Below the pieces are notes generated by a model. That model was not told where the DNA came from, searched no databases, and worked only from the letters and a program-made list of their open reading frames with translations. A stretch of DNA of 64,000 nucleotides from Octopus bimaculoides (lineage: Eukaryota). Where the stretch lies: positions 47,504,833 through 47,568,832 of the forward strand of contig NC_068991.1 of assembly GCF_001194135.2 (NCBI RefSeq), written 5' to 3'. Positions 36,473 to 64,000 of the stretch are shown in pieces (within the stretch, counting starts at the first letter, position 1; each line of letters begins with the position of its first letter). The translations under genes and the position numbers were made by a program.

Positions 36473-38532
36473 GTAATTGATACATAGTTACCTTAAAAGT
36501 TCTTGGTTAATGTTAGCAGCATGGACTTATGAATGCTCCGGTAGGAAGGGTGAGGAAGAATGCTGTCAATTAATGAGTCATTATGATAATGACTCATTAT
36601 TATCATTATTATTTTACAGGCAAGGTTGTGTGATTTAAGAAGTTTGCTTCCCAATTACATGACTTCAAGTTCAGACTCAATGGGCAGCACATTGGGCAAA
36701 TAAAAGACTTATAAGTAGATTTGGTAAACAGAAACTGAAAGAATCCCGTTGTGTGTGTGTGTGTGTGTCATTGTCTTAACATTGTATGATAGTCCAAAAC
36801 GAATGTCATACAAGCAGTGTCATTCGTTTTCAATGTTCTGCAAAAACATGTCTGGCCATGGGGAAATATTATCTTGCTTGGAAACAGGTGAGGGTTGGCA
36901 ACAGGAAGGGTACCTGGTTGAAGAACATCTGCCTTAATAAAATCTGTCTGAACCATGCAAGCATGGAATAGTGATAAGTGGTGACAATGAAAAAAATGAA
37001 GAACAGTATTTGCATTTTATTATATGAATATTGGGACTGCATTAATTCTGTTACCTGACAACTTTACATATTTAAGACAGCTCAGAAAGGTTAAGCTCAA
37101 TGTCTTCTACCACAAGCAAAGTGTTTTCTTTTTTTGAGTCTCCTGAATTCATCAAATTGTTTGACACCTGACGTGTGATGCACCTGTTCAGGCTAAGTGA
37201 TCGTAAAACAATGGGAGATGTAGTGTTTTGCTCAAGAAATACAATGCACCAACTGGTCTAGAAATTGAAACCACAATCTCGAGATTGTGAGTGCAACACC
37301 CTAACCACTAGGCCATATATATTAAATAAATGACAAGGAAATAAGAAATTACTTCTTGAACTTCATTTGAAGCACTGATGAAACTACAGGGCAATACACA
37401 ATAACTCAACTGTGAGTGCATTGCATCTTATAGCAGAAACAGCTGTAAGCTAATGAAGGTACATGACATAATTTCTTATTCCTTTGTTATTTATGTAATT
37501 TCTTATTACTGCTCTACTCAACTGATGCTTTGTTCTGAAGCATATGTATATTGAATCCAAACACCAGGTCATTAGTATTGCTGTGCCTAAGCGAAATAAT
37601 GAAATGTGGGACGTGGTGGTAATGGGGGGGGGGGGCATGGCTATGTGGTTAAGATGTTTGTTTCCCAACCAGGTAGTTTTGGATTCAGTTTTGCTGCATG
37701 GCACCTTGGGCAGGTATCTTCTATAGCCCCCCTCTAAGTCAACGAAAGCCTTGTGAGTGGATTTAGTAAATGGAAATCAGAAGAAGCCTGTCATGTATTC
37801 ATATATATATATATGTATGTATGTGTGCATGCATGGGTGGATATTTGTGTCTCTTTGTCGTGACATCATGCAAGGGTTGCAAACAAGCATCACTGTCATA
37901 CAAGTGGTATCATTCATTTCTAATTTTTAATAAAAATGGGTCCAACCACAGGGAAATATCTTTATCTTGGAAACAAATGAGGGTTTGTCTTAGGGAAGGT
38001 ATCTGATCATATAAATCTGCTTTAACAAATTTTATTTAACCTATACAAGCATAGAAAGGTCATCATCATCATCGTTTAACGTCTGCTTTCCATGCTAGCA
38101 TGGGTTGGACGATTTGACTGAGGACTGGTGAACCAGATGGCTACACCAGGCTCCAATCTGATGTGGCAGAGTTTCTACAGCTGGATGCCCTTCCTAACGC
38201 CAACCACTCCGAGAGTGTGGTAAAAGATGATGTAGCCATATGCATGGTTAAGAAGTTTGCTTTGTAGTGACATAATTTTGGGTTTGATCTTAATGCATCG
38301 CTGACACCCCAGGTTGACTAATGCCTTCTTGAAATTTTCTTGACAGAATCTATTATATGGAAGTCCACTACATGTGTATGTTTGACTTTTTTTTTTTTTG
38401 CATTGGCATTGCTTAGACAATGGTGATATCATCTTGTTTCCTGGTGAAATGTGTATCAGAGAGAGAGGGGCGGAGAGGAGGAGTTCAATAATGATGATGA
38501 TGATTTGAGTTTTTTTTTTAATCCCAATTTAG

Positions 38533-38622
38533 GAACCTTTGAATTCCGAAGATGATGTTAGTGATGGAGATGTTACTGATTTGTTTGACACAGATAATGT
38601 CGTAGTATGCCAGTATGAAAAG
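38533..38622 (+). CDS. GTF2A1: TFIIA alpha/beta exon (EPLNSEDDVSD...DNVVVCQYEK)
   Basis: Conserved EPLNSEDDVS and NVVVCQY motifs; ttag acceptor, GTAAGA donor. Confidence 0.95.
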
Positions 38623-47347: not shown

Positions 47348-47710
<363 letters not shown>

Positions 47711-47928
47711 TCAATGAGTGACCCGGAGGGAAGATGGTAAATGTATGGATTTGGGAAGATACAAAGGCAGCACTGAATATAGCAAAAGATTACAGATGAA
47801 AGCAGACGAGTAAATTGAAACCCAACAGGACAAGAGTACACCCAACAATATGCTGCCTGTCTTTGGCTTGATATAGAAATTAATAACATTTTAGAGACTG
47901 TAACAGAAGACAATTATTAAAATGGTAG

Positions 47929-47998
47929 AAGCTTTCAGAACAAGTGATCATCAAATTATGATTCTCAGTCCGCCACTTATAGTTCATCATATAAGCTT
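47929..47998 (-). ncRNA. Derived U43-like C/D snoRNA, all boxes intact (copy A)
   Basis: C 47984-47990, D' 47965-47968, D 47935-47938, perfect 7-bp stem GAAGCTT/AAGCTTC. Confidence 0.75.
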
Positions 47999-48477
47999 CA
48001 TTTAGCAACCTCTAATAACAATAACTTGAGTAAGACAAATGATCATTAATATCTAATCATGAGAGGACTTCAAAATGCTCACCTTGTGAAACCTTATATT
48101 AGTTATTTTACAATTAATATTTACTTACAGGATGCAACTTTAATAGCTAACTCTGCATACTCATTTGGAAAATAACCTGTGCCTCATATTTCATGCACAC
48201 ATGATTTTCCAGAACACCTGCACTCTACATTTGGTTGCCATGCAATTTAATACATCGTACCTTAACACCATACATGTTTTACATTCAAACCAGTCATTCA
48301 CACTTACCTGCGACAATCACATCATCAAAATCTCAAAGCTATGAGGCATTACATGATTAATTCAAATAAATAAGCATTAGATTTGACACAATAATCTGAA
48401 TGTTAAAGCTGAGTATGCTGTAGAAATTGACCATAATGATTTCAAACAAACAAAAATTATGTAGAAGATAATTATCA

Positions 48478-48545
48478 AAGCCATCAGTCTAAGTGATTGT
48501 CAAATTTTGATTTTTCAGCCCGCCACTTACCTTTCAGCATAAAGT
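48478..48545 (-). pseudogene. Degenerate derived U43-like unit (copy B)
   Basis: D and D' present, box C reads ATGCTGA, several substitutions. Confidence 0.55.
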
Positions 48546-48823
48546 TCACAAGTTGGAAAATATAAGGACAATTTTGGCCTAATAATTTTCCAGCATATCA
48601 CAATTTGTAAACCCCATGCAAATGAATATAAAAATTCAAAATGTTTGCCATATCTTAAAACTTTACTAAAACGAAGTGAACAAAACAATTAACTTTACAT
48701 ATTAACTCCATAACTTACTCTGAAATGGAACTTGAAGAGGAAAAAATGCTTAATATCTAAAGGGTAAATTAAATTCAAGAGAAAGTTTAATAAACCATAT
48801 GAAGACCAATTATTGAAATGGTA

Positions 48824-48887
48824 GAAGCCATCAGAATAAGTGATCATCAAATTATGATTTTCAGTCCGCCACTGAATATAAGCTTCA
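48824..48887 (-). pseudogene. Derived U43-like unit lacking box C (copy C)
   Basis: D, C' and D' intact; segment with TCATCAT deleted. Confidence 0.65.
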
Positions 48888-48987
48888 TCTAACAGCCCCA
48901 AAAGCTAAAAAATATTACGCAAACCAAGCAGTTTGGATTGAGAAACATCAGCTTTAACAAACCATGACTCCTTATAAGAATATAATT

Positions 48988-49015
48988 TTCAGCCTGCCAC
49001 TCATCATCTAGCAAC
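48988..49015 (-). pseudogene. Fragment of derived U43-like unit (copy D)
   Basis: ttttcagcctgccactcatcat plus shared flank; 3' half missing. Confidence 0.4.
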
Positions 49016-49068
49016 CCCACAAGTTGTGAAACACAGCTGTAATATACCATGCCTTACAATTTTCCTGT

Positions 49069-49231
49069 AGGCACAAGAGTGGGTGTGTGCTAAGTAGCTT
49101 GCTTACCAACCACATGGTTCCGGGTTCATTCCCACTGCGTGGCACCTTGGGCAAGTACCTTCTACTATAGCTTCGGGCTGACCAAAGCCTTGTGAGTGGA
49201 TTTGGTAGACAGAAACTGAAAGAAGCCCGTC

Positions 49232-49272
<41 letters not shown>

Positions 49273-49460
49273 TGTGTGTGTATGTTTGTCCCCCTAACAT
49301 TGCTTGATAACAGATGGTGGTGTGTTTACGCACCCGTAACTTAGCAGTTCGGCTAAAGAGAATGCTAGAAGTACTAGGCTTCCTGTGGTTGATTTACTCG
49401 ACTAAAGGCAGTGCTCCAGCATGACCGCATTCAAATGACTGAAACAAGTAAAAGTAAAGT
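49069..49460 (+). mobile_element. Dominant SINE inside snoRNA array
   Basis: Same family. Confidence 0.88.
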
Positions 49461-49790
49461 ACCTTGTCAAAGAATTTACAACCAAAATGCCAACACCACC
49501 ACTTTAAGATGTCTGCTTCACTTTTTGCATTGAACAAAACGATGTGTAACGATTGAACCTAACTTCATTGGACATTTTCAGTATCTCAGCCACTATCCCT
49601 GTATTCATATACTGATAAACACAATTTTTGAAAGGCTAAAAGTAATTGGAGAAACCCATGTGTAACCTTCCCTATGCCAAGTGTTTATCAACAAAATGTT
49701 ATGGTCTTTCAGGTTTACAACAGTCAATATTTAGTTTATAAGTGGTAATAAACTATAGAAACCAAATTATATGAAAGATAATTACTGAAA

Positions 49791-49860
49791 AGCTAGAACA
49801 GAATAAGTGATCATCAAACTGATTTTTCAGTCCGCCACTTATCATTCATCATATAAGCTT
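49791..49860 (-). pseudogene. Derived U43-like unit with box D mutated to CTGT (copy E)
   Basis: C 49846-49852 and guide intact; plus strand ACAG replaces TCAG. Confidence 0.6.
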
Positions 49861-50388
49861 CACAAGCTGTAAAACATAACTATGATATAATTTTATCATA
49901 ATAAGCCTGGCCTCATAATTTCCAGCATATCACAATTGGTAAACCTCATGCTAAGTAAAAGCCTGGTTGCTCTTGCAACCCTCTCCAGCCGAGCATCCCT
50001 AACCTTGTTGGCCTCTAAGTGCTGGTGCTGCGTAAAAAGCACCCAGTACACTCTACAATGGCTGGCATTACAAAGAGCATCCAGTTGTAGAAACCATGCC
50101 AAAACAGACATGGAGCCTTCAGCTGGTCAGATCACACAATCTATGCCAGCATGGAAAATGGACATAAATAATGATGCAAATAATTGTAACAATTCAAATT
50201 AAATTTGCCATACCTCAAAAACTTTACTAAAACTAAGTGAATAAAACAATTGTTAACACTCTTTAGTTGATATCCCATCAAAAGAGCCTTGACTTACTCT
50301 GAGATAGAGGTCAAAGAGGAAAAAAAAATGCCTAATATCCAGATGGTAAATTAGATTCTCTAGAGTAAGCTTAATAAGCAAACCATAT

Positions 50389-50724
50389 ACTCTTATTTGT
50401 TTCAGTCATTTGACTGTGGCCATGCTGGAGCACCGCCTTTAGTTGAGCAAATCGACCTCAGGACTTCTTCTTTGGATGCCTCGTACTTATTCTATGAGTC
50501 TCTTTTGCCGAACCGCTAAGTTACGGGGACGTAAACACACCACCATCGGTTGTCAAGCGATGGTGGGGGGACAAACACATACATATGACGGGCTTCTTTC
50601 AGTTTCCGTCTACCAAATCCACTCACAAGGCTAGACACTTGCCCAAGGTGCCACGCAGTGGGAATGAACTTGGAACCATGTGGTTGGTAAGCAAGCTACT
50701 TACCACACAGCCACTCCTGTGCCT
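50389..50724 (-). mobile_element. Dominant SINE inside snoRNA array
   Basis: Interrupts flank AAACCATA|TGAA that is uninterrupted in the paralogous cassette near 48792-48804. Confidence 0.88.
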
Positions 50725-50750
50725 ATGAAAACCAATAATTGAAATGGTAG

Positions 50751-50820
50751 AAGCCATCAGAGTAAGTGATCATCAAATTATGATTTTCAGTCCGCCACTT
50801 ATAGTTCATCATATAAGCTT
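50751..50820 (-). ncRNA. Derived U43-like C/D snoRNA, all boxes intact (copy F)
   Basis: C ATGATGA 50806-50812, guide CTATAAGTGGCGG, D' 50787-50790, C' TTGATGA, D 50757-50760, stem GAAGC/GCTTC. Confidence 0.75.
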
Positions 50821-51518
50821 CATCTAACAGCCCCAAAAGCTATAAAATATCTCACAGACCAAAGTATATTTTTGTTTTGATCTTAAAAAAAAAACAGAAG
50901 CTGTTAGACACCACAAAATGATAGCATCAACATCAAGGATGCTTCAAACCACTCAATTTCATTTTTAGTGTAACTATCTTTTAATAACTACTAGCAGAGA
51001 TACCTGGCCTTGCTTGGGATTAAAATGGCATAGATTCTTTCATTGTTTTACTTGTTTCAGCCATGTGATTGTGGCCATGTCAGAGCACAGCCGTTGGCCA
51101 AACAAATCGACCACAGGATATATTAGTACTTATTCTATCAGTGCCTTTTGCTAAACCGCTAATTTATGGGAACATAAACACAGCAACATCGATTGTCAAG
51201 CAATGGTGGGGGTACAAACACACCACAAACCTTGCTCTATACATACGTACATACATATGCACATCTATACACGTGTGTATGTACGTATATGTGTATATAT
51301 ATATATCTTACTTGTTTCAGCTGCCTGAGTGTGGCCATGCTGGAGTATTGCCTTTTAGTTGAAGAAATCAACAACTGGACTTACTCTTTGCAAGCCTGGT
51401 GCTCATTCTACCAATATCTTCTGCCGAATCGCTAAGTTATGGGGGAGAGGAGAGAGAAAACAACACAAATATATATATACATATATATATATAGGACAGA
51501 CTTCTGCATGACTCACTG

Positions 51519-51585
51519 GGTGATCAGTAAAGATATTTTATCCACAATCTAATTCAGTGAACGGATCATGTCTCATCATATCACC
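51519..51585 (-). ncRNA. Orphan box C/D snoRNA family 2 (copy a)
   Basis: C 51573-51579, D' 51554-51557, D 51524-51527, stem GGTGA/TCACC. Confidence 0.8.
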
Positions 51586-52392
51586 TTATATGTAGAAGCC
51601 TCCACCACACACCATCAATATTGACCTATACTTCCTCAAATTTTGATTTCTATACTCAAGTTTACAATCCAACTCCACTTACAAATTCAAACAGCCAGTA
51701 TGCATATATACATATATATTTATACATAGTAAATCTAAAAAAAGAAAAGCAAACATGAAAAAACTACAACGCGAGGACGTGGTACATGCAATGTATTAGC
51801 AAATGCTCAGGAAAGGAAAGAAAGATGGTTTAACGTTTCGAGCAAAGCCCATCTTCAGAAATGTGGTTACATATATATATATATATATGTATACACGCAT
51901 ACATAAATATATCATAGTAAAAGTATTAATAGTTTCACTATTGATACATAATACTGAAATAGTGTAAGGAATAAGAGATTGCTCCAGGCTTGCATTAAGC
52001 AAGTTGAAAATTTTTTTGGCCCATAACATTGCATGGACCAAGTAAGGCATGTATAAAATTTGAATGAAATTGGCTGGGTAGTCCTTAAGTTTTAGTGATA
52101 CGCACATACGGACATTCTCAGTTTGATATATATATATATATATAGATGAAATTAACTTCACATGTACAACATTTTTAGCACAAATGCCTAGTGAAGACAG
52201 AATGAACATCTTAGGTCCATATCGTAATTAATACCAACACAACTTTTGAAAGGCTGAAAGCAATAAAATCATGTACAGACTTCCCTCTGCCAAGTAGGTT
52301 ATCCACCAGGTGTTAATGTCTATCAGGTACGCAAGAGTAAATTATAAACTATAATAATCAACCAATATAAAAGACAATTATTGAAAAGTTAG

Positions 52393-52430
52393 AATCCATC
52401 AGAATAAGTGATCACCAATTGTGATTATTT
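52393..52430 (-). ncRNA. 3' half of derived U43-like unit (copy G), cut by assembly gap
   Basis: TCAGAATAAGTGATCA plus shared flank GACAATTATTGAAA; remainder is N. Confidence 0.55.
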
Positions 52431-53225
52431 NNNNNNNNNNNNNNNNNNNNNNNNNNNNNNNNNNNNNNNNNNNNNNNNNNNNNNNNNNNNNNNNNNNNNN
52501 NNNNNNNNNNNNNNNNNNNNNNNNNNNNNNNNNNNNNNNNNNNNNNNNNNNNNNNNNNNNNNNNNNNNNNNNNNNNNNNNNNNNNNNNNNNNNNNNNNNN
52601 NNNNNNNNNNNNNNNNNNNNNNNNNNNNNNNNNNNNNNNNNNNNNNNNNNNNNNNNNNNNNNNNNNNNNNNNNNNNNNNNNNNNNNNNNNNNNNNNNNNN
52701 NNNNNNNNNNNNNNNNNNNNNNNNNNNNNNNNNNNNNNNNNNNNNNNNNNNNNNNNNNNNNNNNNNNNNNNNNNNNNNNNNNNNNNNNNNNNNNNNNNNN
52801 NNNNNNNNNNNNNNNNNNNNNNNNNNNNNNNNNNNNNNNNNNNNNNNNNNNNNNNNNNNNNNNNNNNNNNNNNNNNNNNNNNNNNNNNNNNNNNNNNNNN
52901 NNNNNNNNNNNNNNNNNNNNNNNNNNNNNNNNNNNNNNNNNNNNNNNNNNNNNNNNNNNNNNNNNNNNNNNNNNNNNNNNNNNNNNNNNNNNNNNNNNNN
53001 NNNNNNNNNNNNNNNNNNNNNNNNNNNNNNNNNNNNNNNNNNNNNNNNNNNNNNNNNNNNNNNNNNNNNNNNNNNNNNNNNNNNNNNNNNNNNNNNNNNN
53101 NNNNNNNNNNNNNNNNNNNNNNNNNNNNNNNNNNNNNNNNNNNNNNNNNNNNNNNNNNNNNNNNNNNNNNNNNNNNNNNNNNNNNNNNNNNNNNNNNNNN
53201 NNNNNNNNNNNNNTCCCATTAAAGA

Positions 53226-53314
53226 TATGCCATCAGTCTCAAGAACCAGAATGTATACCCTCCATGTATGTGGCAAAATCAGGTTATACAAGCTAGAGCT
53301 CATCCTCTGGCATA
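53226..53314 (-). ncRNA. Orphan box C/D snoRNA family 3 (copy a)
   Basis: Perfect 7-bp stem TATGCCA/TGGCATA, AGGATGA 53300-53306, D' 53279-53282, D 53233-53236. Confidence 0.65.
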
Positions 53315-53845
53315 CTGAAATGAACCCAACATAGATTGTTCACTTCTAATGACACCCCTCATTCACTCCCTGCAACTCACTGACCATCACCTACCTTTCT
53401 TCACCAACACCCTAGCAGCCATTACTCTCTCTACCCTTCCCAAGCTGTCCCTACCATCTTTTATCTTTCTTACCAACTGAAGCCCAGTTATTCCCACCTC
53501 CACAACAAACTGCTTCTGCCCCTTCTATAACACTTTTCTAACCTCTTAATATTCAGTATACTCTTTGAATATAACCATCAAATCTGAGTTTTGGTTTACC
53601 TGAGGCTACAGATGACACCTGCCCCAAAAATGCTGTGTAATGGGACTAAACTCAAAACCATATGTTTGCAAAGCAGACTCTTGACCATACAGCTATGCCC
53701 GTATCTTGCATTTTATAAGCCAAAAACCTGTGCAATTAAACTGTCTTATGGAATGATAAAATAAAAACTTTACTACATACTAAAATCATTGCTGATTGTA
53801 AAAACACACAAAGAATGATCTCAAAGGAAGTCAGGTGAAATAAAC

Positions 53846-53920
53846 AAGCATATCAGTGAAGTGACAATCATTCATGTTTAGGATTTCAGTCCGCCCGTCA
53901 CTTAAATCATCACATAAGCC
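53846..53920 (-). ncRNA. Box C/D snoRNA, U43-like (copy H)
   Basis: C GTGATGA 53907-53913, guide AGTGACGGGCGG, D' 53886-53889, 3' end TGATTGTCACTTCACTGA. Confidence 0.85.
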
Positions 53921-54437
53921 TGATCAAGAAACTTCACAACCAAAAACCATCAAAACTTGTCATTACATTCCAACTAATACTAACACAACCCACTTATGAG
54001 CAACTGACAAACCCTAAAAAAATTACCATTAAAAAAAAAAAAAAAAGCTTATCCATAAAGCAACAAACAGCAAAAAAATTTATAACCCACATCATAAACT
54101 AAGCACCAATCTAAAATAAAGAGCAAAAGGCCAACCAAGAAGACTTCAAATATCACAACCACGAAGATGCTAGAAATAATCGTTTAGCAATCCTTCAAGC
54201 CATAAAATAACATACAATCTACGGTACAATTTTTGCTAACCACAGCATTAGCACCATCATATGTCAAACCTCGATTTTCCCTGCACTGAAGATGAAAGAT
54301 GCAAGGCATTATATCCAATGCACTATCAAGTAAGTTAACTCTTATTACAAATAATAAAATGTGAAACTAAACCAAACAGTGGTCACAAATTTAATACCAA
54401 CAGTAGTTGAACTATCAAGTTTTAAGTGATCTTCATC

Positions 54438-54497
54438 TGGGGATCAGAAAATCCTTTAACAACACTGCAATTCAGTGAAAGGATCGAGTTATATCAC
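54438..54497 (-). pseudogene. Family 2 snoRNA pseudogene (copy b)
   Basis: D and D' present, guide mutated (GATCCTTTCA), box C lost. Confidence 0.6.
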
Positions 54498-54890
54498 TTT
54501 GCAGAGGAAAACACCACATCTAGCATTAATCAATATAATCTAATTACACCCACCCATATTTAGCCCCAAATGTAGACAAAAAAATCTTTGTATCAAATTA
54601 AAACATTTACTCTATATTACACAACATTTATACGAATTCTTGGTTCTCTGAATATTACCATTTTTTCCAATAGTATTTTGCTTTCTTACCCATACAAAAA
54701 CAAACATCAGCTTCAAATTTCGTAGAAGCATCTCATCAATATGAAGAGTTTATTGCTCCAATAATTCATTTTATAAGCTAAGTTTTGAAAAAATGTGAAG
54801 GCAGGCATAATTTCTAAAACACTCCCTACAGAAAGTGTACACCTATAGCTTTTCTCCATGCTCAAGTAAAATTTAAATTATCATTCACAG

Positions 54891-54966
54891 AAGCCTATCA
54901 GAAAAGTGACTATCATTCAAATTTTGGACATCAGTCCGCCCGTCACTACATATTCATCATATAAGC
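54891..54966 (-). ncRNA. Box C/D snoRNA, U43-like (copy I)
   Basis: C 54954-54960, same 14-nt guide, D' 54931-54934, D 54898-54901, stem AGCTT/AGGCT. Confidence 0.87.
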
Positions 54967-55095
54967 TATTCTCACTCAAAACTGCAAAAACCATATAAGG
55001 CATAATTTAATTAAGTCCATATTAACTTAAGTGGCATTCAATTGTTTAAAGTCTCAGACTTCAAGATTCGTCTTTTAGTTTGTGTGTGTGACAAC

Positions 55096-55364
55096 ACATG
55101 TTGTCAACTGTAAATACACAAAATATTATCACTAATATGGCTTTCTCGATGTCGATCTAGTTTTCTTCTTGGAAATTGACCTCCACAAATGAAGCAGGTA
55201 AGAATGAACCCTAGCTGCATATATGCAAGGCTTTTCTCAAGTTTAAAATGCGACATTGCTTTTGTTATCTACATTCCACACACAAACATACAGAAAAGAA
55301 GTATGTATGTGTATCGAAAAAGCCATATTAGTGATATTTCATGTGTTTACAGTTGACAACACAA
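55096..55364. mobile_element. MITE with about 50-bp TIRs
   Basis: 55099-55150 is an imperfect inverted match of 55313-55361; related end at 15241-15260. Confidence 0.7.
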
Positions 55365-55669
55365 ATACATCAATAAAGATGCAGTTTGGAGAAGGAAAAT
55401 TTTTAATGTATAAATGCAGCAGAATGGGCTAGAGGCATTATCTAGTTGGACAATAGATAATAGTAAAACGAACTACAGAAACCCAGAGTAACTATACAAC
55501 ATTCTAACACCACAAATGGCTTACCTACATTACATTCGTGTTTAGATTATGCATCTTAGGTTACAATATATAAAAAAAAAAAAATCCTGTAAAAATTCAA
55601 AAATTCAAGTCAAACTTCAGTCAGAACTAACAGTTCAAGGTGGTGAAATTATTTCAATGATTTCCATCT

Positions 55670-55736
55670 GGAGATCAGAAAAGATTTTGACAACAGAACA
55701 ATTCAGTGAACGGATCAAATTTTCATCATATCATCC
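55670..55736 (-). ncRNA. Orphan box C/D snoRNA family 2 (copy c)
   Basis: C 55723-55729, guide TGATCCGTTCA conserved while spacer diverged, D' 55703-55706, D 55675-55678. Confidence 0.75.
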
Positions 55737-56650
55737 TGCTGTGGAAAACACCTAACCAAACACAAGCCTGCCAACACATTTCATTTAATTAACCCTTTTG
55801 ATACTGACCTGCTTGAAACCATCTCTGGTTCTATGATACTTATTGTTTTTAAACTATTTTATTCAACCTTCAACATTTAATCCATGCCCAAATATTCTCC
55901 TTAGTTTACATTCAAAACAGCGTCTTACACCCGCCCTACAATGTCAGTCTAAAAATATTACAACACCATTGAAATCTCAAAGATACAAAATAATGCCGGA
56001 TCAATTTAGCACAATACAAAAAAATCTGTAGATTTGAAACCTGAATGTTAAAGAGTAAAAGCTTTTCATCAGCTGTCCGCCAACACTTTTTTCTGCAAAA
56101 TAGGGGTAGCTTATCCTGCTCAGGCCATATTATTAGCATTATCCTGCATTTGAGAATTTAAAATAACTTCTTTAACTTTCTAAGACATCTCAACGCTTCT
56201 AAAGCAAACTTTGTTTGTTTGTTTACGTTCATCATAATTTGAATTTTTCTTTATGTTTTTATGTTCCAAAGATCAGTTTAATAATGACAAAGGTATGCTA
56301 GCAAAAGAGTCTAACAAAGTATTTATATAATGTAACTTGACTGTTACGAAACACCTCAAACCAGCAAGTCTTATATTCAAGTGATTATCTTACTATTTAT
56401 ATAAAATTTCAATAGGAAACACAAAATTGTCAATAGCCTAATACTGATAAATAAAAAAAAGTTTATTTTACACAACTTTTGTTTTAATTATATTAAAATC
56501 TGCAACAAGTCATTGTATTCAAAATAACAAGCAATCTAATTCATGCATGTAATGAGAAGGCAGGCATAATTTCTAAAACATTGCCTACAGAAAGTGTACA
56601 CCTATAGCTTTTTCCAAACGCTCAAGTAAAATTTAAATTATCAATCACAC

Positions 56651-56727
56651 AAGCCTATCAGAAAAGTGACTATCATTCAAATTTTGGACATCAGTCCGCC
56701 CGTCACTACATATTCATCATATAAGGC
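56651..56727 (-). ncRNA. Box C/D snoRNA, U43-like (copy J)
   Basis: C ATGATGA 56714-56720, guide GTAGTGACGGGCGG (14 bp to 18S, one G-U), D' 56691-56694, D 56658-56661. Confidence 0.85.
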
Positions 56728-56987
56728 ATAATTTAATTAAGTCCATATTAACTTAAAATGACTTACGGGTAAAAATAAATAAATAAAATTTTGGTGAGAT
56801 TTATTGCCTTTCTGATTCAATTCATTTTGAAAAGAATTTAGTTAAGTAATTTTACCATTATTCAACTGGGGTTTGGAACATAAAATGAAATTTTAGGCTT
56901 GAATTTTTATCATTTTGTGGATCACTGCACCTCATTCAAATACATGACCACCATGTTCAGAAATCCAGTTCCCTTCAATGTCCTTAA

Positions 56988-57493
56988 CCCTTTTGATACT
57001 AACCTGGCCGAGTACCGATTGTTATTTAAATGTAAATTTGCACACAAATCCCGTTAGTACATTCGTGAAAATACGTGACTTCACTTTGTAAATAGTTGAG
57101 TTATTGTATCGACACTGTTTGGGAGTTTCATGCTATCAAGCAGTGATTCTGAATTTGAAGGCTTTTCAACAGAAGATATGGAGATATTGAGAAAAAGAAT
57201 GAATGAGGTACAAAAGCATGTAGTGAATGAAAATGAATCGGGTATTTCTGTATCCGAAACCGAAAGCAGTGATTCTGAAGAAACTGAAAGCAGCGACAGA
57301 GAGGATGATTTTACCAGAATGGAGTAAAAACTTTAAAAATCTTTTTACTAACAAATTTTCTGAGGAGACAGGGCCTACCTATATAGTCTTTCGCAGGAAA
57401 AGTTCTTTAATGAAACTAGTCCAAATTCATGCTTATTTTAGAACTGAAACTCATGCGGGGTGTATTTTGGTCAGAGATATATTATTGAAAGGG
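56988..57493 (+). mobile_element. Internally deleted piggyBac-like element
   Basis: TTAA-CCCTTT...AAAGGG-TTAA; acidic ORF MLSSSDSEFEGFSTED at 57130 like piggyBac N-termini. Confidence 0.65.
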
Positions 57494-57590
57494 TTAAACC
57501 TTAAATATCCTGAGATACACCTCATTTATTGAAATGCAGCACACAATACTAACACATCATAACCAATATCCAAAATTGCATGACTCTTTG

Positions 57591-57657
57591 GGTGATCAGA
57601 AAAGATATTTTATCCACAGTCTAATTCAGTGAACGGATCATGTCTCATCATATCACC
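57591..57657 (-). ncRNA. Orphan box C/D snoRNA family 2 (copy d)
   Basis: GGTGA-T-ATGATGA-gac-ATGATCCGTTCA-CTGA...CTGA-TCACC; 67 nt. Confidence 0.8.
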
Positions 57658-58153
57658 TTATATGGAGAAACCTCCACCACACACCATCAATATTGATCTA
57701 TACTTCCTCAAATTTTGATTTCTATACTCAAGTTTACAATCCAACTCCACTTACAAATTCAAACAGCCAGTATGCATAACACAAACACCCCAAAGACAGT
57801 TACGGTAATACAAGAGTCATTTACTTAAGTCAATAAATAGTCCTTTCTGCAATGGGCACAAGGCCTGAAATTTTGAGGGAGGGAATAAGCCAATTACACT
57901 GACCTCCCCCCCCCCTGCTCGCCTAACACTTATTTTATCAACACCAAAAGGAATTATAACTCAGAATGCAAAGTTGGACGAAATGCCACTAATCATTTTG
58001 TCTGGCACGCCAACAGTTCTGCCAGTTTGCTGCCTTATTTCAATAAACAATGGAAACTAAATCACCTCTAGATGCGACAGAAAGCAAGTGAACCACCAAC
58101 AGGCAATAAACAGTACAATAACTATGCACTAATGCAAGTGCAATGCAACAAAC

Positions 58154-58230
58154 AAGCCTATCAGAAGAGTGACACTCATCATGATTAGGACATCAGTCCG
58201 CCCGTCACTAAGGTTTCATCACATAAGCTT
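58154..58230 (-). ncRNA. Box C/D snoRNA, U43/SNORD43-like (copy K)
   Basis: C GTGATGA, guide TAGTGACGGGCGG, D' CTGA, C' ATGATGA, D CTGA, terminal stem; 13 bp to 18S CCGCCCGUCGCUA. Confidence 0.88.
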
Positions 58231-58787
58231 GATCTATACTAGCATTACTTCTGTATTGCATGAATGCATAGCTACACACATCAGAGTGAAGGCAATTCAA
58301 GACCCATCCTTATATACATATAAAACTATGTTCCCTGAACTCCTCTTTACTAAAATAAACAAAATGTATTCGTCATTTACTTCAGGAAGTGGGGGGGGGG
58401 AATTCTGATTGAACAGGTTACACATCTTGCATAGCAAATGCCTTTATACAACTGAAATTTTCTCCCATAACCATGGGAAACAAGTTACATTCTTTATGCT
58501 TGCTAACGTCCGTATTATGAAGAAAAAAAAAACTAGAAAAAGTAAATCTAGTACAAAGCCCCAAGGGAATATGTTTTCCATTAAGCAGCACATTCAGAAG
58601 GGGTGGGGGTGCACAACATACATGAAAATACAGTAGTAGCCAAATCATATAAATTTATTTAAAATTACTTTATATCCCAAATCCTGGGGAAACAACACTG
58701 TCAGTCCAAGAATCCCACAACCAAGTTTAATCAACAAATATTTACTCTTTTCCATCCCAGAAGAAGGCCATAATTTCCCATTAAAGA

Positions 58788-58876
58788 TATGCCATAAATC
58801 TCAAGAACCAGAATGTATACCCTCCATGTATGTGGCAAAATCAGGTTATACAAGCTAGAGCTCATCCTCTGGCATA
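58788..58876 (-). pseudogene. Family 3 snoRNA with box D destroyed (copy b)
   Basis: Same body as 53226-53314 but plus strand TAAA replaces TCAG at 58795-58798. Confidence 0.6.
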
Positions 58877-60005
58877 CTGAAATGAACCCAACATAGATTG
58901 TTCACTTCTAATGACACCCCTCATTCCCTCCCTACAACTCACTGACCACCACCTACCTATCTTCACCAACACCCTAGCAGTCATCACTCACTCCACCCTT
59001 CTCAAGCTGTCCCCACTATCTTATCTTTCTTACCAACTGAAGCCCAGTTATTCCCNNNNNNNNNNNNNNNNNNNNNNNNNNNNNNNNNNNNNNNNNNNNN
59101 NNNNNNNNNNNNNNNNNNNNNNNNNNNNNNNNNNNNNNNNNNNNNNNNNNNNNNNNNNNNNNNNNNNNNNNNNNNNNNNNNNNNNNNNNNNNNNNNNNNN
59201 NNNNNNNNNNNNNNNNNNNNNNNNNNNNNNNNNNNNNNNNNNNNNNNNNNNNNNNNNNNNNNNNNNNNNNNNNNNNNNNNNNNNNNNNNNNNNNNNNNNN
59301 NNNNNNNNNNNNNNNNNNNNNNNNNNNNNNNNNNNNNNNNNNNNNNNNNNNNNNNNNNNNNNNNNNNNNNNNNNNNNNNNNNNNNNNNNNNNNNNNNNNN
59401 NNNNNNNNNNNNNNNNNNNNNNNNNNNNNNNNNNNNNNNNNNNNNNNNNNNNNNNNNNNNNNNNNNNNNNNNNNNNNNNNNNNNNNNNNNNNNNNNNNNN
59501 NNNNNNNNNNNNNNNNNNNNNNNNNNNNNNNNNNNNNNNNNNNNNNNNNNNNNNNNNNNNNNNNNNNNNNNNNNNNNNNNNNNNNNNNNNNNTACCCCCC
59601 CACCCCCACCCAAGTGCTCAGCTTACTGTGTAGTGTAGTTGACATTAGGAAGGGCATTTAGCTACAGAAACCGTGCTAAGGTAGATATTGGAGCACTAGT
59701 GAGGTTACTAGGTAACTTGAAGATTGAGTTGGGGTGCACAATTAAGGAGCTGAAGTGTGATAGAACAGGTGTCTTGCAGAAAAGGAGATACACAATTTCC
59801 TCACCTGGAAAAAGCAAAAAAAAAAAAAAGGTACTTGGTGAACATGAAAGAAACTAGAGATAGGCAGCTGGAAAGAAAGGATAGGGAGTCAAGTGTGCTG
59901 AACCTTTCCCTAACTTCAAATGCAACTGATCCAGTTATTTCAGGTACATTAAGTTAAGCAGGTCCAACCTGCAAATGGGAATATTCCATTACCTCCCACT
60001 AAAGA

Positions 60006-60092
60006 TATACCATCAGTCTCAAGAACCGGAATGTTTGTTCTCCATGTATGACAAAATCAGACAATACAAATTAGAGCTCATCCTCTGGCATA
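60006..60092 (-). ncRNA. Orphan box C/D snoRNA family 3 (copy c)
   Basis: TATGCCA-G-AGGATGA...CTGA (60057-60060)...CATTCCGGTTCTTGAGA-CTGA-TGGTATA; 67 nt after the exon 3 donor. Confidence 0.65.
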
Positions 60093-60159
60093 GATCTTAT
60101 TAAATATCACATTTACATAATTCAGAAAATATGAAATCGAAAAAATAAGTGAAACGAAC

Positions 60160-60280
60160 CTCAATGAAATTTAAACAACCATCATTAGGTACGAAGGCTG
60201 TGATCTTTTTACCATTCTTTATGAGCTGTACTCTCACACATTTTCTGATGGCTGAGTTAGGCTGTTTGGCTTCAACACCA
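60160..60280 (-). CDS. RPS23: RPS23 exon 3 ([19 protein letters not shown]...LNFIE)
   Basis: Invariant KQPNSA loop; ttcag acceptor, GAG|GTTCGT donor, 121 nt. Confidence 0.97.
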
Positions 60281-60391: not shown

Positions 60392-60551
60392 ACTTTTTCT
60401 AAAACGATTCCCTTAGCATGGGAAGAACCGCCAAAAGGATTGGCCTTGTATCTGGTACCCAAATTTGCCTTTTTGTAGTCATTATCGTGCCATCTCTGTT
60501 TACGGCGATGATTCTTTAGCTTTCGTGCAGTTCTCAAACCTCTGGGCTTAC
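60392..60551 (-). CDS. RPS23: RPS23 exon 2 ([12 protein letters not shown]...GIVLEKV)
   Basis: uS12 sequence; tttag acceptor, GT|GTACGT donor, 160 nt. Confidence 0.97.
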
Positions 60552-62607
60552 CTAAAAAAGAAAAAAATTCATTTGAGATGGATCCTATATTCGAATTATA
60601 ATGGAAGTAAAACCTGAAATCACAGTCATTGTGCGATAGTATTTGCTGAAAATCAAGAATTTAGAAAAGTCATTCGTAAAAACGAAAATACCAATCCACT
60701 CTGTGCAATCATATTCAATTAAATATAATACAATTTATAATATTAAGGAATGAGATGGCCATGGTTGAAATGTCAGGGTCCTGCAGAAGTCTGCGCGTGT
60801 ACAAAACAAAAACGAATAGGACTATCGTTTATAAAAAATCTCGTTTTCAGGCCAATGGATACTGAGAATGGACGAAGGGAAATAATCCATGTTTCATCGT
60901 GAAATTGAACGTATGCAAATGATTACCATCTCCCCTTCGAGGATAGATACCGCATAGTGTCCCCCCCTTTTTTTTAAGACGGTAGAATGTTTTTTTTTTT
61001 GGGGGGGGGGGGGCTTTTTTTGCCCCAAAACTCACATTTTCGGATACGGAAAATAGCCAAAAATCGGCACTTTGAATCCCCCACCCATTTTTCACGTAGC
61101 ACTAAACTTAAAACTTTAGAGGGATTTTTTTTTTCAGAATCATAATCTCCGTATTTTTTCGGCATATTTTGAAAAAAAGAAAAAAAAAACTTCTGAAATA
61201 AGTTAAAAATGAAGAAATTAGGGTAAGGGAAGGGTAATTTCAAAATGCCGATNNNNNNNNNNCTTGCCCCCCTTTTTTTTTTTTTTACTCTTTCTAACCG
61301 GTCAAACTCAGCATAGAAACTACCTCGCCGACTCGGGCTCTCAATGTTGACGGTGGCGTGTTAGATTTAGCATTGAATGTACACAACACATGCTGAAACA
61401 CACTGAATGAAATGCAGATGGAATTCAGTATCGGTTTCATCCCGACACCGATGATGCCAATAAATCCGGATCCAAGTATCATAGCTAATGTGGCTCTTCT
61501 GAAGAATTCAGAACAATGTATTCAGCAATTTAAGATATGTTACGTATATAATGTGCCTTTCTAATGTTTTCCAGTCACCAATGTTATAATAACATTTTTA
61601 TTATTACACCAGTCTAATGAGTCGGATAGGCGGACTTTCGGAATACTTATCACCTCATGGAGAGGGGGAAAAACAAGGAATTGGGTGGTTGTTTCTTTCT
61701 GTGAAAGATACTTTATTTTGCTATGAGGGGAAACCCCCTCCCCCGCATTCCAGTAAGCTTTCTTACAAGAACAATAGCAATATTTTGTAGACAGGATTTC
61801 GCAATGTACATTACCGTGTAAACTGAATCAACATGACTGAGCAATTCGTTAGGTTTATTTCAACATTACCAGAGCAATAACCACTGCTCCAGTTGCCCGG
61901 CCACGAAGGCAATGTCCAACAGGTTTGCCGAAATAAAAATGTGTATTAAAAAAAAAAAGAATAAACTGTGGTGAAAATTAGATATGCTAAATATAGCGTT
62001 GAACACACCAGAGATATATGATCGATGATATTCCATCTTAAACCTTGGGCAGGGAACAGATTTTCCCAGTGACCCGTTTTAAGACTCCTTGAGAGCGATT
62101 TGGAAATTAGCTGCTATTTCTAGTAGGTCAAGCTCCCTTTTTAAATATCATTTTTTTTTTGTCTAGGGAAATTCTACATTATCAGCTGAGATATATAATG
62201 GAACTACTCAGTAGAAAAAGCAACTTTCAAGATAGCAATAACCAAGTCGGAAAAGTCTTCCAGATAAATATTTCTTAAAAAGTGCATTACCATCTGTAAT
62301 TCCAATGATGATTATTTAACATAAACTTTAAATATAAAGATGAAAAATGTACTTTTTCCAATCGGGACAATATCTAATGTACAAACTAAAATTGTACAGT
62401 TTAGTCATTTTGCACGTGGGTCACTTCTAAAAATGACCAATTATGTGGCAAAACCCAAGTTAATTTCTTAAGAATAACGAAAGCCTTAACTGTTATATAT
62501 TAAATTCAAAGACTTAAAGAAAGGATGGTAATTACTGCATTAATTCATCACAATATATGTATAGATATATTTATTGTAACATAAGGCTGACTGCCATGTG
62601 GAAAGGA

Positions 62608-62825: not shown

Positions 62826-62829
62826 CCAT
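62826..62829 (-). CDS. RPS23: RPS23 exon 1 (ATG G)
   Basis: Minus strand GCCGCCATC-ATGG|GTAAG; phase 1 matches exon 2 (GT AAG CCC = G K P). Confidence 0.9.
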
Positions 62830-62844
62830 GATGGCGGCTTGATT

Positions 62845-62854
62845 GAAAAGAGAA
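62845..62854 (-). promoter_or_regulatory. TCT/5'TOP-type pyrimidine start of RPS23 (TTCTCTTTTC)
   Basis: Oligopyrimidine tract about 16-25 nt upstream of the ATG, typical of ribosomal protein genes. Confidence 0.75.
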
Positions 62855-64000
62855 CGTGTCACGAGAGGGCGCTGTAGGGTAAGAAAGATTTGTTAGAAAG
62901 GGAGGGAGGATGTTACGAGAGTCTCGTTTGTCACATGACTTCTCCTTGTCAAATCTCATGTGAGTGACTCTAGAATATATTAGCAGACAGATCCACAGAG
63001 AAACTGACAATTATTTCTGGGTTGAAGCCTTTGCTTCATATTTCAGGGGATTTATTAAATAACAATACATAAATATATATACATATCTGTTCTAAATGGA
63101 TTACCGAGGAGTTGGTTCTATATTTTCTATTATTTTAATTTCATTAGCACCAATATTTGCAAATGATGTACCTGCTCTGATATGGTCACCTTCACGGTAA
63201 TATATTAATTATAATACAATATAAAATATAAGTAAAATATAATATATTTGTAATATAATGCAATGTCTACCTAAATATTTCTATTTACAGTTGTTTCACC
63301 TCTGACATATATACATAATTAATATCTGTCCCTATTATGGTTCTGTTTCACCTCCTTTCTTTCATATATTTTGGACAGTTTCTTCTATTACAATTTCTTG
63401 TTGTTCTTTATCTCATCCGCCCCCAGATTTCCCTATTACAAATTACAATAATAATAATGTCTGTCTCTAATTTTTCTGTACAGCTATTTATCTTCTTTTG
63501 ACGCACTTGTTGAGGTGCTCTCCTGTTGATTATGGTAATACACACACACACATATGCATCTATCTACACACAGACACACACATTTATATGTGTGTGTGTG
63601 TGTTTTCTGTATGATTAAATATAAGCATTTTCAATGTGTAAAGCCATTCCACTATCGCATTGCTTTGTTATTGGACTCTGATCCCTCTCTTGCTTTATAT
63701 AAACACTGTCAGTATGAACACTTTATATTATCTAATTTAATATTTCTTTTTCAAAGACTAATTTCATATTTAATTAAAGCATTCTGGCTTTTTCACTCAC
63801 CCACATTTTTGTCTTGAGAAGAAGAAAGAGGTGCTAGAATCGAGGGAACTAAACTCTAGAATATTCATTTCAAGAAGCTTTTGACCCTGTAAAAACAAAA
63901 CGCAAATACAGCGATCCCTGTCAAGACTGAATCCGTTTTAGAGATTTATCGTTTCAGTTCCAGATCATCCTTAAGTCCCGTGATCAAACATGTTTCAACC

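Follow-up and report, generated by a model that had tools for sequence, protein, structure and literature searches.

In Octopus bimaculoides, the gene for the 40S ribosomal protein S23 (RPS23) lies on the minus strand of the window analysed here (the whole stretch of 64,000 nt), and its intron 3 contains 17 box C/D small nucleolar RNA (snoRNA) units and one fragment of such a unit. It is probable, judging from the sequence, that this is a genuine intronic box C/D snoRNA gene cluster, which was locally duplicated, is cotranscribed with RPS23 and is released by cuts between the units. The host is an ordinary ribosomal-protein gene. Joining the minus-strand exons yields precisely the S23 protein of O. 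bimaculoides (XP_014772553.1), and the identical protein is also present in O. sinensis and O. vulgaris. We found four places encoding it: the loci L001 of O. vulgaris, L002 of O. sinensis and L003 of O. bimaculoides, and a cDNA record, L004. In the annotation of the three genomes, the stretch that carries the units is a single intron. In the cDNA L004, exon 3 is joined straight to exon 4, and 432 of 432 positions match the spliced coding sequence of O. vulgaris and O. sinensis. Thus, the whole intron 3 stretch is removed from the mRNA. For intron-containing transcripts, an intronic open reading frame (ORF) was looked up exactly in transcript assemblies, with no match.

Box C/D units in intron 3 of RPS23

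Using motif and nhmmer scans of the 64-kb window, we found that all of the units lie on the minus strand, i.e., in the sense of the host gene, and within intron 3; no unit was found in the window outside this intron. This agrees with the preliminary description of the sequence, in which about 18 C/D units in the host sense were placed in one RPS23 intron of 12.7 kb. The tally given there, 11 U43-like units, 4 units of family 2 (F2) and 3 units of family 3 (F3), holds as well, and the U43-like units are divided into 4 U43A and 7 U43B. We also used a strict scan, in which a C box R[U/G]GAUGA had to be followed by a CUGA 45–100 nt further on and by a terminal stem of at least 5 bp. On the sense strand of the intron it returned 7 units, compared to a mean of 0.07 (maximum of 2) in 300 dinucleotide-preserving shuffles, and on the antisense strand of the intron it returned none. 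The only match of the strict scan outside the intron (38494–38579, plus strand) turned out to be an ATGATG microsatellite (ATGATGATGATGA repeat) and not a snoRNA; this repeat adjoins an apparent coding exon ending in AAAAG|GTAAGA.

The table of boxes and stems shows that 11 of the O. bimaculoides units are intact, with boxes and stem (F3_1, F3_3, U43A_1 to U43A_4, F2_1, F2_2, F2_4, U43B_1 and U43B_5), one is truncated at an assembly gap, and 6 are decayed. The statement that every unit has C/D boxes and a terminal stem is therefore correct for the 11 intact units, but about one third of the copies are dead. Similarly, there are several families, as was described, but not three. Alignments and the table of boxes and stems give four guide classes (U43A, U43B, F2 and F3), since the "U43-like" units comprise two of them, and the U43 guide is present in 4 copies only.

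The layout of U43A is GUGAUGA or AUGAUGA, the guide AGUGACGGGCGGA, CUGA, then GUCAC.. and the final CUGA, with terminal stems of 6–10 bp. In U43B (n = 7, counting the fragment and the gap-cut copy), the D' guide UAUAAGUGGCGGA is 3 nt shorter, and the D guide is GAUCACUUAUU. From the alignment, U43B and U43A clearly share a common ancestor. F2 units consist of AUGAUGA, ..UGAUCCGUUCA, CUGA, a variable D guide and CUGA, closed by the stem GGUGA/UCACC. F3 units are about 87 nt long, with CUGA as both D' and D boxes, the D guide CAUUC(U/C)GGUUCUUGAGA and a 7–8-bp stem. The C box RUGAUGA (in F3, a variant C box) and the D box CUGA are both present in 11 units of O. bimaculoides and 14 units of O. 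vulgaris. In every intact unit the D' CUGA lies 15–19 nt past the C box, and the terminal stems of intact units are 5–10 bp long, apart from some F2 copies, where they have 3–4 bp. Predicted minimum-free-energy folds closed the 5' and 3' ends in all four class representatives (4/4), and the fold energies of these four did not differ significantly from those of shuffled sequences. The alignment also shows that the boxes and one guide per class are invariant over the paralogues and the three species, and that the remaining segments vary. These are at least four classes of predicted snoRNA guides that are unannotated in cephalopod genomes.

The first unit, F3_1, is located about 66 nt from the 5' splice site, at the same position in all three species. 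The last unit, U43B_5, ends at 47928, i.e., 432 nt upstream of the 3' splice site. This is in line with the earlier estimate of about 435 nt for the nearest unit and with the conclusion drawn from it, that the units depart from the vertebrate placement rule.

Conservation and turnover of the units

The cluster was compared in three species of the genus Octopus. The introns of L001 and L002 are gapless, and intron 3 is 15.4 kb long in O. vulgaris and 12.7 kb long in O. sinensis. Both contain 16 units of the same families in the host sense, so that the comparison of the RPS23 intron across these Octopus species supports the preliminary description. The order in both species is four F3 units, then U43A-F2-F2-U43A-F2-F2-U43A, and then five U43B units; 14 of the 16 units of O. 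vulgaris are intact.

Identity between O. bimaculoides and O. vulgaris was determined over the aligned columns of the best BLAST hits. For the intact units, 783 positions out of 813 aligned ones agree (96.3%). In the remainder of the intron, identity is 87.0% where the sequences can be aligned, and a further 32% of this remainder is unalignable (Fisher p = 3e-18 for the intact units versus the remainder). The units are thus better conserved than their spacers, as had been noted from the window. By contrast, the decayed U43B_2 and U43B_4 are 84% and 74% identical to O. vulgaris, respectively, which is at or below the background identity. In a meta-profile, identity is 0.84–0.85 in the 40 nt upstream, 0.94–0.97 within the units, 0.92 over the first 20 nt downstream and about 0.79 past that. 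Such differences in identity show the intact copies to be under apparent purifying selection.

Within the window, the paralogous units are 80–90% identical, and the spacers are either 69–72% identical or unalignable. Three pairs are recent duplicates, with 95–97% identity over 176–282 nt. The paralogues share flanks that are not A-rich on both sides, and some spacers are homologous (69–72%), which indicates segmental duplication at the level of DNA. Retroposons derived from snoRNA (snoRT) were also considered and rejected, as the copies are found in one intron only and have no A-rich tails. The O. bimaculoides lineage and the O. vulgaris/O. sinensis lineage differ in how many copies they carry and in what order. 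We infer that the cluster expanded as short DNA blocks, each comprising one unit and its flank, were duplicated locally again and again, accompanied by birth and death of copies. Outside the genus, the homologous RPS23 intron of the clam Mercenaria is about 430 nt long and contains no units, and there are no cephalopods among ten neighbouring 90%-identity clusters.

It is unlikely, although slightly less so than the other alternatives, that the cluster consists mostly of inert duplicates, where one copy per family (for example, the one nearest the intron ends) is processed and the rest are young pseudogenes that have not yet decayed. Visible decay in 6 of the 18 O. bimaculoides units, the recent duplicate pairs with their 95–97% identity and the variation of copy number between species would all be expected in this case, and under the position rule of vertebrates, units remote from the 3' splice site should be processed poorly (PMC5519232). 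However, several paralogues in each family have one-to-one orthologues with 94–100% identity, while their flanks are 82–92% identical. Copies with broken boxes (74–84%) drift at or above the background rate, so decay is fast enough to be visible once the constraint is gone.

Predicted targets of the guides

Targets in ribosomal RNA (rRNA) were sought in a panel of 120 real eukaryotic ribosomal DNA (rDNA) loci from metagenomes, fetched by a conserved 28S 19-mer. Every guide was compared with this panel, and U43A alone gave a convincing target. The D' guide of U43A forms 12–13 bp with the 18S sequence ACCGCCCGTCGCT in every panel locus that reaches the 3' end of 18S. The fifth-nucleotide rule puts the methylation on the equivalent of human 18S C1703 (in a human 18S of 1869 nt). 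This nucleotide, in helix 44, is the site of human SNORD43. Because its guide pairs at this site, U43A is the predicted functional equivalent of U43 despite a low Rfam score, which is 19.9–22.4 bits against SNORD43 (RF00221) at a gathering score of 45. In U43B, which has no match to this family, the pairing of U43 with 18S is lost: after the deletion of 3 nt in the guide, about 5 bp are left.

Several other candidates were rejected. The D' guide of F2 forms 11 bp with the large-subunit rRNA sequence UGAAUGGAUUA, but two of the pairs are G·U and one of these falls on the methylation position. The D guide of U43B was compared with 28S AAUAAGUGG, and this lead was dropped because just 9 bp were formed. 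F2 scores 27.4–28.2 bits against SNORD2 (RF01299), which is below the gathering score of 37; the alignment covers the boxes and the terminal stem alone, and the guide is not shared, so F2 was not assigned to SNORD2. One lead was retained: the D guide of the decayed F2_3 (54440–54496), GUUGUUAAAGGAUUUU, forms 14 bp with 18S UAAAUCCUUUAACGA, and the intact orthologues of F2_3 in O. vulgaris (L001 13800–13864) and O. sinensis have a mismatch beside the predicted methylation site. This pairing may reflect a former or a real target. No cis targets of the guides were found in the window. At permissive E-values, the Rfam scan gave just the weak SNORD43 and SNORD2 matches and some spurious miRNA matches. 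The latter, sub-threshold matches to mir-297, mir-1277, mir-3149 and other Rfam families, were judged to be false positives caused by low-complexity (AT)n/(GT)n hairpins; the microsatellites giving the false miRNA matches lie at 49224–49292, 51236–51312 and 51850–51912.

Proposed release of the units from the intron

Internal units share one excised intron, and their separation would therefore need endonucleolytic cuts in the spacers. The spacing of internal units is 0.3–1.2 kb and reaches about 3 kb at a long interspersed nuclear element (LINE) in O. vulgaris. We propose that all of the units would be transcribed within the RPS23 pre-mRNA, and that the core C/D proteins would assemble on each unit via the C/D kink-turn and the 5–10-bp terminal stem, whatever the distance to a splice site. 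Endonucleolytic cuts in the spacers would follow, and exonucleases would then trim the products to the protected ends. If cutting were inefficient, long noncoding RNAs with a snoRNA at each end (sno-lncRNAs) would accumulate. Without cuts, the exonucleases that degrade the debranched intron would be halted by the outermost small nucleolar ribonucleoproteins (snoRNPs) and leave sno-lncRNAs, as in the case of introns with two snoRNAs. In mammals, long external stems make the assembly of C/D snoRNPs independent of splicing (PMC5519232). Endonucleolytic release is known for some intronic snoRNAs of Xenopus, which are cut by XendoU, and also for yeast and plant polycistrons (PMC10557570).

As the main alternative, we tested release of the units through hidden exons or recursive splicing. 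It is rather improbable that the intron is removed stepwise via cryptic exons or ratchet sites with one unit in each sub-intron. Some signals would suit this route. The conserved (Y)17CAG|GTGAGGAA (59805), which follows F3_1 after about 200 nt and lies about 350 nt into intron 3 (at about 6120 in L001 and about 6095 in L002), could separate F3_1 from the other units in a first step of 354 nt. A strong 3' splice-site-like tract 139 nt after F3_1 is conserved, and CAG|GTAAGA is found behind some F3 copies of O. vulgaris and O. sinensis. However, we scanned 24 intact units of O. bimaculoides and O. vulgaris, and 21 of them have no polypyrimidine-YAG tract resembling a 3' splice site within 160 nt downstream. 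None of the AG|GTRAG sites after the units is recurrent, and none is conserved except for one near F3_1. Extra exons are absent from the cDNA L004, the annotation of the three genomes gives one intron, and the spacers are poorly conserved and rich in transposable elements. Thus, recursive splicing as a general release route, which had been suggested earlier alongside endonucleolytic cleavage, finds no support in the sequence, and the only conserved site, at 59805, could isolate F3_1 at most.

Many intronic small RNAs of nematodes are reported to have promoters of their own. By analogy, each octopus unit could have its own intronic promoter and not need the RPS23 transcript. The units are far from the splice sites, and an AT-rich, TTTATA-like stretch precedes some U43B copies. 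Nevertheless, we consider independent transcription very unlikely: no upstream motif is common to the families, the 40 nt upstream stay at the background identity of 0.84–0.85 compared to 0.94–0.97 inside the units, and every unit of every family is in the host sense.

Several observations weigh against a cluster of functional snoRNA genes that is released by cuts. At the Rfam gathering thresholds there were zero matches in the whole window and in the two sister-species loci, and no family reached its gathering score. For U43B, the D' guide of F2 and F3, no convincing target was found in the 120-locus panel. The C box of F3 is the non-canonical AGGAUGA, with G for U at position 2, and is invariant in 10 copies. 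In some F2 copies the terminal stem has just 3–5 bp. Gene conversion among the paralogues could inflate the conservation of the units, which was measured as best-BLAST-hit identities. Finally, simple splice-site scans would miss weak or non-consensus sites. Taking these points into account, we still regard a genuine, cotranscribed cluster released by cuts between the units as the probable explanation.

A more far-reaching possibility, which we consider doubtful at present, is that a pathway independent of splicing position cuts one ribosomal-protein intron into a dozen or more C/D snoRNPs and/or a ladder of sno-lncRNAs, and that most of the units (U43B, F2 and F3) are orphan guides specific to the lineage, whose targets lie outside conserved rRNA. 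If this were true, invertebrates would have a counterpart of the SNORD115/116 arrays of mammals.

Assembly gaps and the copies of sister species

The chromosome-level locus L003 is base-identical to the window over the full overlap, gaps included. The suggestion that the two N gaps in the intron may hide copies is reasonable: one of them halves a U43B unit and the other lies at the site of an extra F3 copy in the sister species (Table 1). The contigs flanking each gap are colinear with the introns of O. sinensis and O. vulgaris. The "out-of-order" units F3_3 and F2_4 each adjoin colinear sequence without a break in their own contig, and their position is therefore read as a lineage-specific segmental duplication and not as a misjoin. 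An assembly artefact, in which contigs collapsed or duplicated around the gaps inflate the copy number or a foreign contig is misplaced in the intron, is hardly credible: although this is a short-read assembly with estimated gap sizes, and the contig between the gaps (53214–59055) has the same 282-nt sequence at both ends (94.7% identity), two independent gapless assemblies of sister species have 16 units in the same intron, order and strand, F3_3 and F2_4 are physically contiguous with colinear sequence, and a divergence of 5% between the repeated contig ends points to paralogues and not to identical collapsed reads.

Host gene, neighbouring features and mobile elements

The positions of the RPS23 exons, the units and the gaps are given in Table 1.

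Table 1. Features of the RPS23 gene and its intron 3 in the window (listed in the direction of RPS23 transcription)
Feature	Position	Strand	Characteristics
RPS23 exon 1	62826..62853	-	Pyrimidine-rich leader CTCTTTTC..., end ATGG|GTAAGT; 5' limit approximate; gene start from L003
RPS23 exon 2	60392..60551	-	In cDNA L004 too
RPS23 exon 3	60160..60280	-	
RPS23 intron 3 (GT...AG)	47495..60159	-	12,665 nt counting two N gaps; all units inside
F3_1	60007..60091	-	Intact; C box AGGAUGA, D' and D boxes CUGA, 7-bp stem
Recursive-splice-like site (Y)17CAG|GTGAGGAA	59797..59823	-	Kept in three species; only one in intron
Assembly gap	59056..59592	.	Sister species carry extra F3 copy in matching stretch
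F3_2	58789..58875	-	Decayed; D box CUGA changed to UUUA
U43A_1	58155..58230	-	Intact; D' guide AGUGACGGGCGGA; stem 9–10 bp
F2_1	57591..57657	-	Intact; C box AUGAUGA; D' guide UGAUCCGUUCA; stem GGUGA/UCACC
U43A_2	56652..56725	-	Boxes intact; recent duplicate of U43A_3, 95% over 176 nt
F2_2	55671..55733	-	Boxes intact; weaker stem
U43A_3	54892..54967	-	Intact
F2_3	54440..54496	-	Decayed; C box lost
U43A_4	53847..53920	-	Intact; 100% identity to O. vulgaris orthologue
F3_3	53227..53313	-	Intact; 8-bp stem; 13 nt from gap
Assembly gap	52431..53213	.	Hides at least 5' half of U43B_0
U43B_0	52393..52426	-	3' half only; cut by gap
F2_4	51519..51585	-	Intact; recent duplicate of F2_1, 96.5% over 202 nt
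U43B_1	50750..50821	-	Intact; D' guide UAUAAGUGGCGGA, 3 nt shorter than U43A; D guide GAUCACUUACU
U43B_2	49798..49861	-	Decayed, D box lost; orthologue decayed too
U43B-type fragment	48985..49010	-	C box and guide remnant
U43B_3	48824..48884	-	Decayed; C box deleted
U43B_4	48478..48543	-	Degenerate; C box AUGCUGA, C' lost
U43B_5	47928..47999	-	Intact; 7-bp stem; last unit
RPS23 exon 4 with stop codon	47348..47494	-	

The cDNA L004 (GCA_016612955.1, JAENPV010000087.1; 436 nt) is an intronless O. vulgaris/O. sinensis RPS23 sequence that is filed under an assembly of "Campylobacter fetus subsp. venerealis" and named "30S ribosomal protein S12" (MBK3499493.1). It is a eukaryotic cDNA contamination in a bacterial genome record. 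Head-to-head with RPS23 exon 1, at a distance of a few hundred nt, there is an ATP6AP1-like gene with VAS1_LD and Ac45-VOA1_TM domains; the two genes, in the region of about 62826–64000 of the window (1–3004 of L003), probably share a bidirectional promoter. In intron 1 of RPS23, a 10-nt gap (61253–61262) lies between long homopolymer runs, and these flanks suggest poor assembly at this place.

The spacers of the intron tolerate short interspersed nuclear elements (SINEs), a piggyBac-type miniature inverted-repeat transposable element (MITE) and, in O. vulgaris, a 2.5-kb LINE, which fits with spacers that carry little information. A 514-nt spacer element at 56984–57497, with TTAA ends and the inverted termini TTAACCCTTTTGATACTA / TATTATTGAAAGGGTTAA, looks like a piggyBac-type MITE, and a solo end is located at 55789–55803. 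An antisense ORF of 65 aa inside the 514-nt element had no Pfam match. In intron 3 of O. vulgaris, a 2.5-kb insertion (L001 18138–20641) that is absent in O. sinensis lies between the last two U43B units and has an uninterrupted ORF of 791 aa in the host sense, similar to a LINE endonuclease/reverse transcriptase. This is probably a recent retrotransposon insertion. A SINE-like repeat occurs three times, once inverted, in the spacers of the U43B part (49068–49456, 50385–50725 and 51046–51444).

Comparison with known systems

The novelty implied by the preliminary description was overstated. Intronic snoRNA gene clusters were found in rice (Liang et al. 2002) and then, in an animal, in Drosophila (Huang et al. 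2004, 2005), as cited in PMC2780460. In a 2024 review, "intronic snoRNA clusters" are a recognised category (PMC11028025). With more than two snoRNA genes in the host sense in one intron, where at least two define such a cluster, the octopus RPS23 intron 3 belongs to this category. As in rice and Drosophila, several host-sense snoRNA genes share one intron of a protein-coding gene, the paralogues appear to have arisen by local duplication, and release must not hinge on one snoRNA per splicing event. The fly clusters of Huang et al. are reported to be mainly box H/ACA, and the C/D snoRNAs of the fly to occur mostly one per intron in dUhg hosts. The octopus cluster differs from the rice and Drosophila clusters in that it is all box C/D, has 16–18 units of four guide classes, is spread over 12.7–15.4 kb, belongs to a mollusc and has spacers of 0.3–3 kb that are invaded by transposable elements.

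U43A resembles human SNORD43 (U43, RF00221): the octopus D' guide GACGGGCGG together with the D' box is complementary to 18S ...ACCGCCCGUCGC..., and the D-side segment GUCAC..UCUGA is similar. Unlike human SNORD43, octopus U43A is multi-copy and is hosted by RPS23, whereas the vertebrate SNORD43 host is RPL3. U43B deviates further from SNORD43 through the 3-nt guide deletion, which leaves about 5 bp at that 18S site.

The canonical intronic C/D snoRNA of vertebrates is the only one in its intron and lies about 50 nt upstream of the branch point (PMC5519232). In octopus, 16–18 units are found in one intron, and the last of them is 432 nt from the 3' splice site. If these units are expressed, this would be a clear case in which a single intron of an animal protein-coding gene gives many box C/D snoRNAs, and it would counter the vertebrate rule of one per intron near the branch point. 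The intron could also serve as a natural substrate for studying C/D snoRNP assembly at a distance from splice sites and for identifying the animal nuclease that separates adjacent units. The interest would rise if efficient release of internal units, sno-lncRNAs or non-ribosomal targets of the orphan guides were shown.

Mammalian introns with two snoRNAs give rise to sno-lncRNAs, as in the Prader-Willi region and in RPL13A of mouse (PMC4234469, PMC11028025). As in these introns, more than one C/D snoRNA lies in an animal intron, and exonuclease trimming from both ends would halt at the outermost snoRNPs. The mammalian sno-lncRNA introns have two snoRNAs and have been shown experimentally, whereas the octopus intron has up to 18 predicted units. 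With yeast and plant polycistrons, which depend on Rnt1/RNase III (PMC10557570, PMC12508059), the octopus cluster would share the need for endonucleolytic separation before exonuclease trimming. However, most of those polycistrons are transcribed as units of their own and have short spacers with defined RNase III stem-loops, and no such signals were identified in octopus.

As in SNORD115/SNORD116 and the UHG/dUhg hosts, there are many tandem paralogous C/D units with birth and death of copies and guides that are partly orphan. In those systems, every unit occupies a separate intron flanked by non-coding exons; in octopus, there are no detectable exons between the units, although rare non-coding isoforms may carry some, and the host is a ribosomal-protein mRNA. 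The octopus intron offers a compact view of birth and death, with lineage-specific duplications, the 3-nt guide deletion that leads from U43A to U43B, and dated decay of copies. We found no paper on the organisation of cephalopod snoRNAs, and the giant-squid genome paper gives Rfam counts only. Thus, intronic clusters as such are already known. What is unusual about the octopus cluster is that all of its units are C/D, that it is so large, that transposable elements have invaded its long spacers and that it occurs in a mollusc.

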